From: Mytilus californianus
Lineage: Eukaryota
Length of the DNA stretch: 64,000 nt
Assembly (NCBI RefSeq): GCF_021869535.1
Contig: NW_026262690.1
Span: forward strand, 50,158,001-50,222,000
Direction: 5' to 3'
Part shown: piece by piece, positions 5,341 to 63,912 of the stretch
Numbering within the stretch: the first letter of the stretch is position 1
Layout of the letters: every line of letters starts with the position of its first letter
The notes under the pieces: generated by a model
Seen by the model: the letters and a program-made list of their open reading frames with translations, nothing else
Databases searched by the model: none
What the model was told of the DNA's origin: nothing
Position numbers and translations under genes: made by a program

Positions 5341-6912
5341 TCATCGTTTTGATGATTTTTTATGTTCTTTCACTAAATGTGCCATTTCCTTTAAACTTTC
5401 GTAAATGCCTTCTCCTGTTGATGCACATGACCCATGTATAAACCATTTATGTCCTGTCAGTTTGTGTAAATGTAAACCTTCTGCTACTTGTGATGGACTA
5501 AGTGCATCTAGAAAAGATTGAAATAAATAAATGTTGATAATAATGATAAACATGTTTACAGCAAGTTCTATACAAGAAATAGTATGATATCGAAAGTAGT
5601 TTCAAATTTATTTTTGTAGCAATCAAAGAGGAATGAAATCATTTGCGCTTAAAGTTAAAAAGTATCTGTCAGCTATATAGGTCTTCTCTTGGTCTATTAA
5701 TATTAGACCTCTAGGTATTGTACGTTTCAAAGATCGTGCACCCTCTATGTAGATTGAATTTCTAACGCTTTTTAATCACGATCAGGTAAAATTTTATTCA
5801 CGCCGTTAAATAAGGATATATTTATGTTGAGATTAAGTTCTTAACTTTGCAAAATCCGCTTTTGGGAGAGAAAATATTTCAATAAAAACTTCCAAAAACA
5901 ATTTCATAAATATCTTTACTTTGCCTGTATTCTTAATGATATTCTTATACGACTTTTTTCATTGACTCATTTAGAATTTACTTACTAGGGAGATCCTGCT
6001 TATTAGCCACGACAACCAGTGGTACGTTTCTCATCTCATCATTCTGTAATATTCCATACAATTCTTCTCTAGCTTCTGCCATCCTCTCTCTATCGTTACT
6101 ATCAATTATGTACAACAGACCTGTAACGGGATAAAATAAATAACTCATTATACAAACAAATTAGAAAATGGTCGTTAAACTAATTCGATTTTTATTTATT
6201 TTATGATGCACAAGAGAGGTGCTTTCAGGGTTAATTGTAAAATTTAACTATCATTAAATATCTACAAGGCAATATAAGATTATACTAATATGGTAAATGA
6301 GAATGGTTTGAAAGTAATCGGAATTGTCTATATAACAAACTCATAATAAATATAAACCAACCTTCAGTGTTCTGGAAGTAATGTCTCCATAATGGTCTGA
6401 TTCTGTCCTGTCCTCCCACATCCCATACAGTAAAACTAACTCCTTTACATGGATTTACTGTTTCAACATTGAAACCTATCGTTGGTATAGTTGCCACGGT
6501 TTCGTTCAGTTTAATTTTATAAAGAATTGTGGTTTTACCTGGAAAAAATATATATAACATAAAAATAAGAATATAAGGATCCAAATCGAATAAAAATTCA
6601 TAAATCCATAACATTCATTTGGTTATTAAATCAGGCGGACAATTCCCCTCTTCAAAAAGGGATAAAACGCGCTAAACATTCTTTATAGTACAGTACAAGA
6701 TATTTACAATATATTTGATTGAACTTCCCGATTAAAATAAAGATATTCCGACCATTTAAGAATTATAAAATAATGATAAGAAAACACACAAACGAAAAGA
6801 TTATTAAACTGGACTAACCTGCTGCATCTAATCCTAACATAAGTACTCTGGCAGGATTGGATCCAGTAAACTCAGATAATGCATCTTTTAACTTTGCCAT
6901 TAATCCTCCCAT
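5341..6912 (-). CDS. ARF-family small GTPase A1, canonical motifs, 190 aa
   Basis: join(6819..6912,6362..6538,5986..6120,5341..5507); GT-AG introns, all phase 1; 573 nt. MG start, [37 protein letters not shown]. Confidence 0.96.
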
Positions 6913-7062
6913 TTTTATCGTTTTCTGTGTTAGCTTGTCAAGAAATATGAAAGGTATTTGAAGGCAATGAAATTGACCTCCGTGTTTTTATTAATAATTT
7001 TTAAATCGTCAAACTTGGCCATGTCGATTATTACTATGTGTCATAAACCATGTTGGAGGAAT

Positions 7063-7070
7063 TGACGTCA
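7063..7070. promoter_or_regulatory. Candidate CRE/ATF site TGACGTCA, about 150 bp upstream of the A1 ATG
   Basis: Perfect palindrome; function inferred from the motif only. Confidence 0.3.
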
Positions 7071-8644
7071 TACTAAAGATTTCCTACAGGATTTAAATAA
7101 ACCGATTATCATTGGCATGTAGATAGATAGCTGTATATATATGTACCTACATAATGTCTATTTTTAATTAATATACATGTAATTTTATAAATATTTAATT
7201 TATAATGGCTGAGAGTGTACATATAATTTTAATAATTGAATACAATCATACGTTAACTGTTTGAAGGAATGATTGTTTCAAATTAACAACAAATTATTCA
7301 TTCAATTGTTTTAATGTTATGATACATCTCCATTAGAGACAAATATAGATATATTTTGAATATCTTTGAAATCAAATATGCCTCAAGAAGTAAACAGACA
7401 ATCACGCAATCGTTCCTCGTGAATACACTACAAGTTTGTGCAATTAAAGCATCGAGTAATGACCAAACTGAGAGTCGGGGGCTGGGGGGGGGGGGGGGGG
7501 GTGGGGGGGGGAAGGGGTGTAAACAAAAAGTATAAATTTGTAAGATGTTTTTTTATTTTCTTTGTGTTGTTGGTTTATACAAATAATCGACAAAAAATAT
7601 ATTAAAACAGTAAAAAAAACAAAACAACACCGCAAATAAATAAACATAACAAAATAAAATTGAATGAACTGTATTTCCGCAATATTCAATGATTTCCTTA
7701 TGACAACAAATCAAATTATCAAATGTGTACATCCTATAAAACTATGAAAGCAAAATTGCATTAGTTGTAAAATTTCCTAAAATTTTTCTATCTTACAAAC
7801 CCAGATACTATTTAGTTATCTCGTATAATCCATTTCACAGTTTCCGTCTCGTTCCTCGATACTTCACAGAAAGTTTTTTCTCTTATTGAAATTGTTGTTT
7901 TAGCAGCCAGGAATGATTACTGTTTTTATAGACTTATTTTTTTGTTTTTGTCTTTTTCAACAAATTTTCAGTTTTACAGTCTGAACATTACTGGTTTCCA
8001 ATTGAAATTCAAAAGCGTTTGCTTTCGTACCAAATTTGTGCAGCATCTCCTACATGCTAAATGAAGAATATTTTATTATTCTATAATTAAGAACTTTGTC
8101 TCCCTTTAACTTGCAATGAGTAACACGACGGGTGTCGCTATTGTAGCAGAAACTGCTTACCCACTGTTTTTGATGAGTTTGTTGTGTGTCGTTTTCTTTT
8201 TGTTCGTGATGTTGTCTGTTTTTATTGGGCTTGTGCTTTTTGACTGCTCCCCATGCTATCTTTTTTCTCTTTTTTGTCAATTTTCATAAAGTATCAATAC
8301 AAAGATAACCAATTTCATCCACAGCTTTTTTAACGTGAATATTCCATAAGCCATATTGTGTTATGTACCCCATATCAAAGAAGCATTTAAGGAGCTTTAT
8401 TTTCATTTAAACAGGTTTGGAAAACTAGTTTCTTACTCAGAATATCCCTAATTTCATGTAATAATCTGGTTTTGTAAAGATTTGAAGGTAACAATTATTT
8501 TTATATTAATTGAAAACTTTTACAAAATATAGATAAGGATACTTTCTTTTCTTCAATTATTTTTGTTGAAAAAAATAAAATCAATGAAGGAGACACAACT
8601 GATCGTTCATACTTTAAAAAGATGTAGTCAATGAACCCGAAGGG

Positions 8645-61313: not shown

Positions 61314-61607
61314 CTTACATGATGTGGTTGGGTTTACTTCGTTATATGATGTCGAAACGTCATTATGTGCTTTCATCGTCGTTATGGTCAATGAACATGA
61401 TTACGATTAGAACGATTACTGTCTATGTCATAACTGATTCCGATCTGCTTCTGTGGAATTACTATAAACCTGGCGCAAATCTGTAGCTATCGTTTGGAAA
61501 ATGGTTGAGATTTAAAAAGAGATAAACCTTGGCTTGTTGGTACCTCGTTTTAAGATAAAAAAGATCAAATCTGATATTGTTGGAAAATTGTCAAAATATG
61601 AATTGCA

Positions 61608-61942
61608 AAAGAGGGACGAAAGATACCAGAGGGACAGTCAAACTCATAGATCGAAAACAAACTGACAACGCCATGGCCAAAAATAAAAAGAAAAACAGAC
61701 AAATAATAGCACAGATGACACAACATAGAAAACTAAAGACGTAGCAACACGAACCCCACCAAAAACTGGGGGTGATCTCAGGTGCTCCGGAAGGGTAAGC
61801 AGATCCTGCTCCACATGTGGCACCCGTCGTGTTGCTTATGTTATTACAAATCCGGTAAATAGTCTAATTCGGTATGTCACATTCGTGAAAAGGGAAGGGT
61901 ATTGTAGTTACGACATAAGGAACATATCCGATATCATCTGCA
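61608..61942 (+). repeat. Dispersed repeat (GAAAGATACCAGAGGGACAGTCAAACTC...CTCCGGAAGGGTAAGCAG family)
   Basis: Related minus-strand fragments at about 8130-8280, 9690-9865, 53705-53915 and 58848-58880. Confidence 0.65.
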
Positions 61943-62756
61943 AAGTTCAGTTTTAATCGATGGGTCTACAATAATAAACATACGGGGTCTACAATAATGA
62001 TCATACGGTTATAGTTATTAAATTTAAGAAATAATTCTTTTATGCCATGCTCTATGCTCATTTTAACAAGGGTTGGCATTCATTGGACTGGGGAAATATC
62101 ATTTAAGTGACTGTTTTCGAAACTTTCACTTCCTTTCTTTTTAGTCATTCGGTTGAATATTGTCCTGATTTTTATATTAAATGATACATTACAAAACATT
62201 TTTGAAAAAGACTATTTTTTACTCCTTTTTCAGCATTTCTACCAGGTGCAAAGCTGAATATATGTCTACTAATATTAAATAATTTATCAAAATCCTCTAT
62301 AGATAGCCTAAGGTGTCACTACGGTTCATTCATTTGAATTATCACATGTAAGACTATCTATACTGAAGCGCTGTTATTTTATTACGTTTTGAGACTCAAA
62401 TGATACAAAAACATTATACCAGTATGCTTCATGAATCATGCTTGTTCTTCAGTATTGTTCTTAGAATGTTGGCCCCGTGCAACTGTATAAAATCCATGCT
62501 TTTTCAAGTGCTTGTAGGAATTTTTGTCATCAAATAATTTACCATATCCGTTCAGTTGTTATTTTTATTTACTTATTAATTTACTTATCTGTTTTTAATC
62601 AAATTATATGTTTCCTTCTTTATTCCAGTTGTGTCTTTTCATTATATATAGTGTCGTGACTCTTTTAATTTCGGAGGAACAAATACATATTGACAGTTAT
62701 TCTATCTTATATTTCATTATTTCATCGTCCTTTATTTCAGTAATGTTCTAAAACGC

Positions 62757-63912
62757 ATGGGTGGAAGGTCCTCGAAAGTTGATGAATTATTTTCACACTT
62801 TCCACAGTTAGATAAAACTCATATAATAGTGATTGGATTACACAATGCGGGTAAGAATAATTTAAGGAAATAGTATCATATTGGACAGATTAATTTAAAG
62901 CAATAATATCATATTGAACAGATTAATTTAAAGCAATAGTATCATATTGGACAGATTAATTTTAAGCAATAGTATCATATTGGACAAATTAATTTAAAGC
63001 AATAGTATCATATTGGACAGATTAATTTAAAGCAATAGTATCATATTGGACAGATTAATTTAAAGCAATAGTATCATATTGGACAGATTAATTTAAAGCA
63101 ATAGTATCTTAATAGATAGACATGGTTTCAACTTCTTTACGCATGACACATGTTACCGGAATAGTCCTCATCGGATATGGTCTGTAAACCAGACCTAAAA
63201 TCTAAAAAGGTGTAATGATTAATCGTTAAATAGATTCTATATTTTTCGACAGGTAAAACATCCATTATGCGAGGCATGGGTTTAGATTCCGGCTTGAAGA
63301 AGATTTCCCAGGTAGGAATGCCAATTCTGACAGCAAAGATTGGTAAAAATGTCCACATCACAGCATGGGATGTTGGTGGACCTGGCAAATTACGGAGTAT
63401 GTGGGAGCATTATTTCAGTGTATCTAAAGGTAAATTTATAATTTTTCAAACCTTTTGCCTTAATTAGCAAATATAATTACAGTAGTTTCATAATCAATCT
63501 ATGGAAGACCTACACAAAATGTGCGATGGCATCAAGATTGAAAGAAAATAAATATTATCATTTCTTTATAAATACCATTTAAAATTAAAAAAAAAGGCAG
63601 GTTTGTTGCAGTTATTCGATATCTGTGTTTATTTGAAAAAAAGAAAGAACTCCATTAGACTTATGAATTTGAATATCCCTTTGGTAACTTTCGCCTCTCA
63701 TTTTCCTTTGCTTATTTCATTTGAAATGACTAAATCTGCAATCATGTATTAATTTTGAATCATATAAATACATTCAGGTATAGTGTTTGTAGTTGATAGT
63801 ACTAACAAGGAAACACTAGCAGAAGCTTCTGTGGAACTTAATACCATTTTAAATAAAAAGATATTGGCTGGTGTTCCTTTAATGGTAATGGCAAACAAGC
63901 AAGATATGCTCG
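62757..63912 (+). CDS. Divergent ARF-like A9, 3'-partial (exon 4 outside window), opposite orientation
   Basis: join(62757..62850,63253..63429,63778..63912); GT-AG introns, phase 1. MGGRSS..GLHNAGKT, switch I KISQVGMP, WDVGGP, NKQD. Confidence 0.9.
62859..63108 (+). repeat. 33-bp minisatellite, ~7.6 copies, in intron 1 of A9
   Basis: TTGGACAGATTAATTTAAAGCAATAGTATCATA starts at 62881, 62914, 62947, 62980, 63013, 63046 and 63079. Confidence 0.95.

Follow-up and report, generated by a model that had tools for sequence, protein, structure and literature searches.

In this work we describe a tandem array of ARF-like GTPase genes from the mussel Mytilus californianus, in a window of 64,000 nucleotides (JAKFGE010000004.1:50,158,001-50,222,000, assembly GCA_021869535.1; 31.7% G+C, zero N). 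Throughout, the window is that whole stretch and positions are counted from its first base. Nine ARF-family loci, here named A1 to A9, are found in it. Our preferred reading, which we consider probable, is that most of a tandem array of the Arl19 subfamily lies in the window and that, within this array, old copies lacking the catalytic glutamine (Gln) of switch II have been kept by selection. The Arl19 family itself was already described; what sets Mytilus apart is an old set of Gln-less Arl19 copies.

An all-against-all comparison of the stop-free segments of the window in six frames yields four exon families with 9, 9, 8 and 8 members, whose order is repeated at nine places. At each of the nine loci exon 2 matches the Pfam domain Arf (PF00025) above its curated cut-off, with E from 2e-23 to 4e-8, and PF00025 is matched also by exon 3 of A5, A8 and A9. 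Scanning the window with hidden Markov model (HMM) profiles, one per exon family, displayed no tenth fragment. The nine loci put forward in the original prediction, an earlier reading of this DNA, are recovered from exon families and Pfam matches, with database gene models in agreement for A1, A2, A5, A7 and A9, and the nine-locus array is real and far beyond chance. The span delimited by that prediction, 5341 to 63912, starts at the final base of the A1 stop codon and ends at the final base of A9 exon 3. Eight loci lie on the minus strand while A9 lies on the plus strand, in agreement with the inverted member that had been predicted.

The loci share a plan of four coding exons and three introns. 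As had been claimed, the intron positions are common to the array and in phase 1: intron 1 falls inside the P-loop Gly codon just before GK[ST], intron 2 inside the Gly codon following switch II and intron 3 inside the codon after NKQD and two further residues. The boundaries are GT-AG, apart from the ancestral intron-1 donor of A8, which reads GG in the assembly. The summed exon lengths are divisible by three and give 190 amino acids for A1, 187 for A2-A4, 190 for A5, 178 for A7 and, in one model, 183 for A8; furthermore, the predicted split codons of A5 and A7 agree with the orthologous M. edulis and M. coruscus proteins. Walker A (GxxxxGK[ST]) is present in all nine loci, for A8 under either donor model only, and NKQD in 8/8 loci possessing exon 3. 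All nine first exons open with Met-Gly, so that Gly2 represents a predicted myristoylation signal. Across species the database labels of these genes are inconsistent ('ARF1', 'ARF1_2', 'ARF6', 'ADP-ribosylation factor 6-like', 'ADP-ribosylation factor-like', 'uncharacterized protein') and mask their common origin.

The family to which the array belongs was assessed by similarity and gene structure. Against solved structures, A3 exon 2 scores 86 bits with ARF1, 79 with ARF6 and 64 with ARL1, and for the array the best solved match is always ARF1 or ARF6, never ARL1, 2, 3, 5 or 8. The nearest database proteins are 'ARF-like' proteins of 187-191 amino acids from molluscs, annelids, nemerteans, cnidarians and sponges. 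Matches P0074 and P0049 are XP_009067077.1 and ELU16341.1, listed respectively as LgiArl19a and CteArl19 in the supplement of Vargova et al. 2021 (PMC8358228). On a single scale of phmmer bit scores, A1 reaches 279 with Lottia Arl19a and 266 with Capitella Arl19, against 235 with ARF1, 210 with ARF6 and 167 with ARL1. Full-length comparisons were made through the M. edulis orthologue P0131 for A5 and through P0198 for A9. A5 scores 153-175 with Arl19-type proteins, 133 with ARF1, 136 with ARF6 and 114 with ARL1, and A9 scores 144, 123, 106 and 93 in the same order. Furthermore, the exon ends of Lottia Arl19a coincide with the three intron positions of the array (P-loop Gly, Gly after switch II, after NKQDLP), and Lottia Arl19b is found 8.6 kb downstream of Arl19a on the same strand. 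We class A1-A4 as Arl19 genes, and not as Arf1 or Arf6, because they score higher with Arl19 and carry the three intron positions of Lottia Arl19a. Arl19 is described as a holozoan ARF paralogue that originated before the metazoan-choanoflagellate split and was lost in vertebrates; it is placed near Arf6 and Arl4 without resolving as a clade, its function is unknown, most invertebrates have 1-2 copies (Lottia 2, Capitella 1), and some Arl19 genes have one intron in common with Arf1 (PMC8358228). The premise of the original prediction, that such genes belong to the most conserved, low-copy ARFs, finds no support, as these are Arl19 genes, and in oysters, scallops and Lottia the Arl19 group occurs as several copies in tandem.

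Four loci at the left of the window are canonical, and A1-A4 all keep Gly2, the N-terminal helix, Walker A, the switch I Thr, DxGGQ and NKQD. A1 (190 amino acids; 5341..6912, minus strand; exons 6912-6819, 6538-6362, 6120-5986 and 5507-5341, stop included) gives the strongest Pfam Arf match (E 2e-23), and its exon residues are identical at 187/187 positions to XP_052105352.1, a M. californianus protein labelled 'ADP-ribosylation factor-like'. Its orthologues in four further Mytilus species show 97-99% identity; a 233-amino-acid form of the A1 model also exists in M. edulis. Residue differences between A1 and A3 amount to 26%. The database annotates a 187-amino-acid gene (region L001 2360-4647) at the exact bounds of A2 (12266..14553, minus strand; exons 14553-14460, 13698-13522, 12886-12752 and 12423-12266). 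A2 is 90-91% identical in amino acids to A3/A4, with synonymous divergence (dS) of 0.48 and a ratio of non-synonymous to synonymous divergence (dN/dS) of 0.10. The remaining two, also of 187 amino acids, are A3 (17741..19624, minus strand; exons 19624-19531, 19291-19115, 18383-18249 and 17898-17741) and A4 (25688..27256, minus strand; exons 27256-27163, 26920-26744, 26273-26139 and 25845-25688). They form the near-identical pair already noticed in the original prediction, with 98% amino-acid and 97% coding-nucleotide identity, and are held in a duplicated block (16541-20028 / 24575-27661) of 80-93% DNA identity. Given their dS of 0.13, dN/dS of 0.07 and introns 84-87% identical, these comparisons explain the pair by plain duplication followed by constraint. 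The nearest M. edulis gene to A4 (region L002 15500-16959) shows 97% amino-acid identity.

The other five loci, A5-A9, are derived, with 24-55% identity to one another and to A1-A4. A5 (190 amino acids; 28941..31813, minus strand; exons 31813-31717, 31399-31226, 29581-29444 and 29104-28941) starts with MGIC and has DVGCG in switch II, with no catalytic Gln; its orthologues in M. edulis, M. trossulus and M. galloprovincialis are 91-93% identical. A6 (36795..39035, minus strand) is the wreck that had been predicted. Its exon 1 (39035-38939) has an intact donor, its exon 2, from 37098, is stopped at about 36968 following DVGGK, and its exon 4 is reduced to a tail (36890-36795); neither exon 3 nor the start of exon 4 was found by segment comparison and exon-HMM scan of the window. 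In M. coruscus the A6 copy has full-looking exons 2 and 4 and a model without exon 3, while in the M. edulis copy exon 2 has lost another internal stretch and exon 4 is not detectable. A7 (178 amino acids; 46673..49911, minus strand; exons 49911-49848, 49725-49552, 49200-49063 and 46833-46673) starts with MGIC as well, has a shortened N-terminal helix and DVGGG in switch II, and its exons match the first 176 residues of the M. coruscus protein P0206 at 94% identity. One M. coruscus model of 291 amino acids joins A7 to the A6 remnant. P0132 was considered as an A7 orthologue and rejected, being an alternative A5 model that misses part of exon 3.

In A8 (54866..56842, minus strand; exons 56842-56749, with uncertain 3' end, 56024-55848, 55499-55365 and 55011-54866) the DxxG core is lost and switch II reads DIPFLE. 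Its ancestral intron-1 donor (window 56749-56770) is GG here versus GT in M. coruscus, and the gene is annotated with 178 amino acids in M. coruscus but only 144, from an internal Met, in M. californianus. An in-phase GT located 15 nt downstream would give 183 amino acids with five residues inserted before GK[ST]; another GT two codons upstream would shorten the P-loop. The GG donor may reflect an error in the assembly, a polymorphic site or a donor lost recently, and a fresh splice-site loss is probable. A9 (62757..64000, plus strand; exons 62757-62850, 63253-63429 and 63778-63912; 200 amino acids in total) is the most derived: the switch I stretch TIPTIGFN is replaced and switch II reads DVGGP. 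Its exons 1-3 are identical at 133/133 residues to XP_052057840.1 (200 amino acids) and its M. coruscus orthologue shows 98% identity. The AlphaFold model of A9 has a mean predicted local distance difference test (pLDDT) of 84, with lower confidence in the switch regions, and a target-normalised TM-score of about 0.9 against ARF1-GDP structures; as modelled, the ARF fold is retained in A9.

The catalytic Gln, present in A1-A4, is therefore replaced by G in A5, K in A6, G in A7 and P in A9, the whole motif being replaced in A8. In an alignment of Arl19-like proteins across animals (n=127) the switch II Gln is found in 120/127; the Gln-less ones are four A5 and two A9 sequences, all from Mytilus, and a single protein from a frog. 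Loss of the switch I Thr is seen in A9 alone, among the array loci and likewise among the 127 proteins. We regard A5-A9 as atypical ARF-family members, judged from these motifs, because the catalytic Gln (A5-A9) and the switch I Thr (A9) are gone.

The array continues past the right edge of the window. Within 12 kb of that edge are found A9 exon 4 (region L005 12771-12962, plus strand; window-equivalent about 65.5-65.7 kb), an exon-2-like ARF remnant (region L005 13469-13636, minus strand) and a tenth gene, A10 (region L005 20457-22932, minus strand), which is canonical and Arl19-type, with 196 amino acids and DIGGQ, and whose exon 2 is 76% identical to A3 exon 2. The same layout of A9 exon 4, remnant and A10 is present in M. 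coruscus. Hence the count of nine is set by the window edge and the array holds at least ten linked loci. The original prediction had described a series running from canonical to increasingly derived. The division into canonical A1-A4 and derived A5-A9 stands, but no simple gradient is seen, since the identity to A3 is 47% for A5, 46% for A6, 49% for A7, 55% for A8 and 41% for A9, and A10 is canonical. As the derived genes lie between canonical ones, the apparent gradient is a window-edge effect.

Selection was estimated from dN/dS counts summed over exon-wise alignments. Synonymous sites are saturated in every within-window comparison involving A1 or A5-A9, and dN/dS between the old paralogues is unusable for that reason. 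Between species, dN/dS is 0.07 for A1 (dS 0.28) and 0.06 for the A4-type gene (dS 0.21) against M. edulis. For the derived genes it is 0.16 for A5 against M. edulis (dS 0.24) and, against M. coruscus, 0.20 for A8 (dS 0.11) and 0.12 for A9 (dS 0.11). By these ratios A5, A8 and A9 are under purifying selection between Mytilus species. Their dN/dS of 0.12-0.20 shows that selection has kept them and, together with frames, splice sites and motifs that survive saturating divergence, argues for a function in A5, A9 and, up to recent times, A8. The pairwise between-species ratios of A5, A8 and A9 display no detectable arms race. The word 'diversifying' used in the original prediction thus fits the old divergence, with its saturated dS, but not ongoing positive selection, given the same three ratios.

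The order RPE65, A1, 187-amino-acid genes, A5, A6 is preserved in M. edulis, and the order A7, A8, A9 (opposite strand), A10 in M. coruscus, so that the proposed check on synteny gave conserved order and orientation in both species. Outside Mytilus, Crassostrea virginica has five Arl19 loci, one of them broken, in 14 kb (region L007 1108-14404), and Pecten maximus four to five, one broken and one partial (region L008 780-11430); all are GGQ. The broken copies, with a frame change in exon 2 in the oyster and a stop in exon 2 in the scallop, are unannotated. Because the oyster and scallop arrays also hold broken copies, copy gain and loss are general in bivalve Arl19 arrays. In Mytilus, the young pair, the pseudogene, the fragment beyond the window and the probable fresh splice-site loss support the birth-and-death type of cluster that had been proposed.

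The search with full-length A5 was word-indexed over 5.8 billion proteins, and that with A9 exon 2 was exhaustive over 1.84 billion representatives. The former returned 91% identity for Mytilus, 52% for A7 and at most 49% for everything else. The latter returned Mytilus at 98% and three short contigs at 60-76%, below which came generic ARFs reaching no more than 44%. No A5 or A9 orthologue was placed outside Mytilus in either protein search, a restriction that represents a lower bound on the distribution, other mytilid genera being not identifiable in these searches. The predicted lineage specificity of the copies is upheld within the searches made, A5 and A9 having close relatives placed only in Mytilus. 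The three short A9-like contigs are P0140, P0141 and P0149. Among the representatives, proteins with two to seven ARF-like stretches were also observed (P0142, P0156, P0163 and P0172), with Gln-less switch II in P0156, P0163 and P0172; these may be true multi-domain proteins or gene predictions that merge members of other tandem arrays.

Other explanations of the same loci were weighed. A5-A9 could be merely decaying, non-functional duplicates, and several features would agree with this: decay of the A6 pseudogene took a different course in each of three species, A8 is without its ancestral donor in the assembly and is annotated as a 144-amino-acid fragment only, an exon-2-like remnant follows A9, and catalytic residues are gone from all five of A5-A9. 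Yet A5, A7 and A9 have kept complete frames, GT-AG sites, Walker A, NKQD and Gly2 despite saturated synonymous sites, and their orthologues in other Mytilus are 91-93%, 94% and 98% identical respectively. The original prediction had named simple decay, with dN/dS near 1, as what would speak against it; the pairwise ratios of 0.16 (A5), 0.12 (A9) and 0.20 (A8) are far from this, and we consider decay as the whole explanation unlikely. It had likewise named one-to-one orthology with ancient ARL subfamilies. That the nine loci are orthologues of distinct ancient ARF/ARL subfamilies which merely adjoin would suit the 24-55% identity of A5-A9, a range found between named subfamilies. This is largely refuted by the same three phase-1 introns in all nine loci and in Lottia Arl19a, by best solved matches that are ARF1/ARF6 and none of the five ARLs named above, by better scores of the derived proteins with Arl19-type proteins than with any solved ARF, and by the lack of A5 or A9 orthologues outside Mytilus in the searches of 5.8 billion and 1.84 billion proteins. 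Hence it is extremely improbable.

The original prediction favoured a role in host defence, with the derived copies as immune decoys or sensors intercepting toxins that need host ARF-GTP, such as cholera-toxin-like A1 chains or the Vibrio MARTX MCF. The role of ARF as a toxin cofactor is well founded, solved complexes of CTA1 with ARF6 (2a5f) and of a Vibrio MCF-like effector with ARF3 (6ii6) being among the structural matches. Mussels live alongside Vibrio and have many expanded defence families, immune gene families show a similar tandem expansion with turnover, and the changes are concentrated in switch I, interswitch and switch II, the surfaces used in the solved toxin-ARF complexes. On the other hand, a race between host and pathogen should leave a surplus of amino-acid changes, which is not what is seen, dN/dS being 0.12-0.20 for A5, A8 and A9 and 0.06-0.20 when A1 and A4 are added, and the paralogues are old and syntenic in three Mytilus species. 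Moreover, a decoy needs the toxin-binding surface, yet switch I of A9 and the switch II core of A8 are replaced. The decoy fits poorly because the derived copies have changed the very surfaces that ARF-dependent toxins contact, and escape, or a new function, would account for the altered switch surfaces at least as well as a toxin-binding decoy. No signalling or death-type domain is fused to the copies, and the long open reading frames of the window are without Pfam matches. Literature searches found no link between Arl19 and immunity and nothing relevant on ARF/Arl19 expansion in bivalves or on expression after Vibrio challenge. Thus decoys or sensors are a very unlikely explanation, and there is equally little chance that the altered switch surfaces of these old, private, presumably hydrolysis-dead and membrane-anchored Mytilus Arl19 paralogues serve defence, for instance by titrating or detecting ARF-GTP-dependent effectors.

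We therefore return to an Arl19 array with selectively kept Gln-less copies. In this reading the array grew as an Arl19 gene was locally duplicated again and again, some copies being lost and one inverted. The switch II Gln was lost in an old sub-lineage comprising A5, the A6 pseudogene, A7 and A9, and probably independently in A8. The derived proteins would still bind guanine nucleotide but without the usual hydrolysis assisted by a GTPase-activating protein (GAP), and without normal cycling they may behave as constitutively 'on' or nucleotide-state-independent ARF-like adaptors. Their attachment to membranes would be through myristate, to which the Cys at position 4 in A5/A7 could add palmitate, and they would offer changed switch surfaces to their partners.

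Several points weigh against this reading, beside the lower bound on distribution given above. Dissimilar to the ratios of A5, A8 and A9, the dN/dS of A7 against M. coruscus is 0.55 (6 non-synonymous, 3 synonymous) and that of A10 is 0.82 (9 non-synonymous, 3 synonymous), values which derive from 9 and 12 substitutions and are readable neither way. A1-A4 and A10 as a group are under strong purifying selection, the ratio of A10 itself (0.82) being unreadable. The A8 of this individual may have been inactivated only recently, transcription and splicing of A5-A9 are predicted from gene models, and a 'GTP-locked' state is deduced from motifs alone. Furthermore, a neighbour-joining tree places A5, A7 and A9 on a long branch outside all metazoan Arl19-like proteins and not beside the Mytilus canonical copies. 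This tree is rough, with two non-metazoan ARF outgroups and without reference Arf4, Arf6, Arl4, Arl20 and TRIM23. Bootstraps are 100% for A5+A7 and 96% for A5+A7+A9. As the derived clade falls outside, Arl19 descent rests on gene structure, array position and similarity scores. The canonical copies are found among bivalve Arl19-like proteins and cluster by bivalve lineage, which suggests repeated independent duplication or homogenisation.

Arl19-like proteins of 185-200 amino acids are also annotated in bichirs, sturgeon and several frogs (P0027, P0125, P0213, P0223, P0240, P0252 and P0298), some of the vertebrate ones being labelled ARL14-like. Those of Polypterus, Bufo and Acipenser group with invertebrate Arl19-like proteins in the same rough tree. 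Going by these sequences, the vertebrate proteins may qualify the published absence of Arl19 from vertebrates.

As for the rest of the window, the 5' part of an RPE65-family gene (carotenoid oxygenase, PF03055; 518 amino acids) occupies 1-2880 on the minus strand and exits the left edge. It adjoins A1 on the downstream side and is the same neighbour in M. edulis. Simple repeats comprise a perfect 24-bp repeat x4.6 (3701-3810), a run of about 40 G (15153-15194), a 21-bp minisatellite x22.6 (57269-57741) and a 33-bp repeat x7.7 (62854-63108) that fills much of A9 intron 1. Three inverted pairs of interspersed repeats, with 91-93% identity within pairs, are found at 23215-23718 / 32575-33094, at 35655-36389 / 47495-48267, with one copy in A7 intron 3, and at 57755-58182 / 60869-61313, between the head-to-head A8 and A9. 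The inverted repeats showed no coding capacity. Ten long intergenic open reading frames have no Pfam match, so that no transposon or virus-like genes were found in the window.

Arl19 is one of few ARF-family paralogues of unknown function and is absent from the usual model animals. The bivalve tandem copies, together with the constrained Gln-less set of Mytilus, form a natural series for probing its role, and the Gln-less series could reveal how a GTPase switch evolves into an adaptor without hydrolysis. Among known systems, the closest is Arl19 as published: A1-A4 share with it the length of 187-190 amino acids, the long N-terminal helix, the basic C-terminus and, as in named Arl19, one interswitch residue more than ARF1. 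Mytilus differs by an array of at least ten linked loci against the published 1-2 copies and by a Gln-less sub-lineage that is absent from the description in PMC8358228. With true ARFs (Arf1 class I/II and Arf6), A1-A4 have in common the fold, the G1-G5 motifs and the Gly2 signal. However, A1 scores 235 bits against ARF1 and 279 against Arl19, the array exon 2 has 58 residues where the aligned ARF1 stretch has 57, and the array genes are neither single-copy nor near-invariant.

For the derived copies, a different comparison is offered by ARL13B, an atypical ARF-family GTPase without catalytic glutamine, whose complex with ARL3 (5di3) is among the structural matches. Like A5-A9, it has a switch II without Gln and has kept its nucleotide-binding motifs; it is an example that proteins of this sort can work without normal hydrolysis. 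In contrast, there is no sequence orthology between ARL13B and A5-A9, and ARL13B carries a long extension at its C-terminus and acts in cilia. By analogy, this resemblance may be a lead on how A5-A9 work and not a family assignment. Finally, the expanded GTPase arrays of invertebrate immunity, such as the GIMAP/AIG family of molluscs (for example PMC7053062), are likewise lineage-specific tandem sets of small GTP-binding proteins that gain and lose copies. The Arl19 array, for which the selection estimates give no sign of a defence role, is of another GTPase family.

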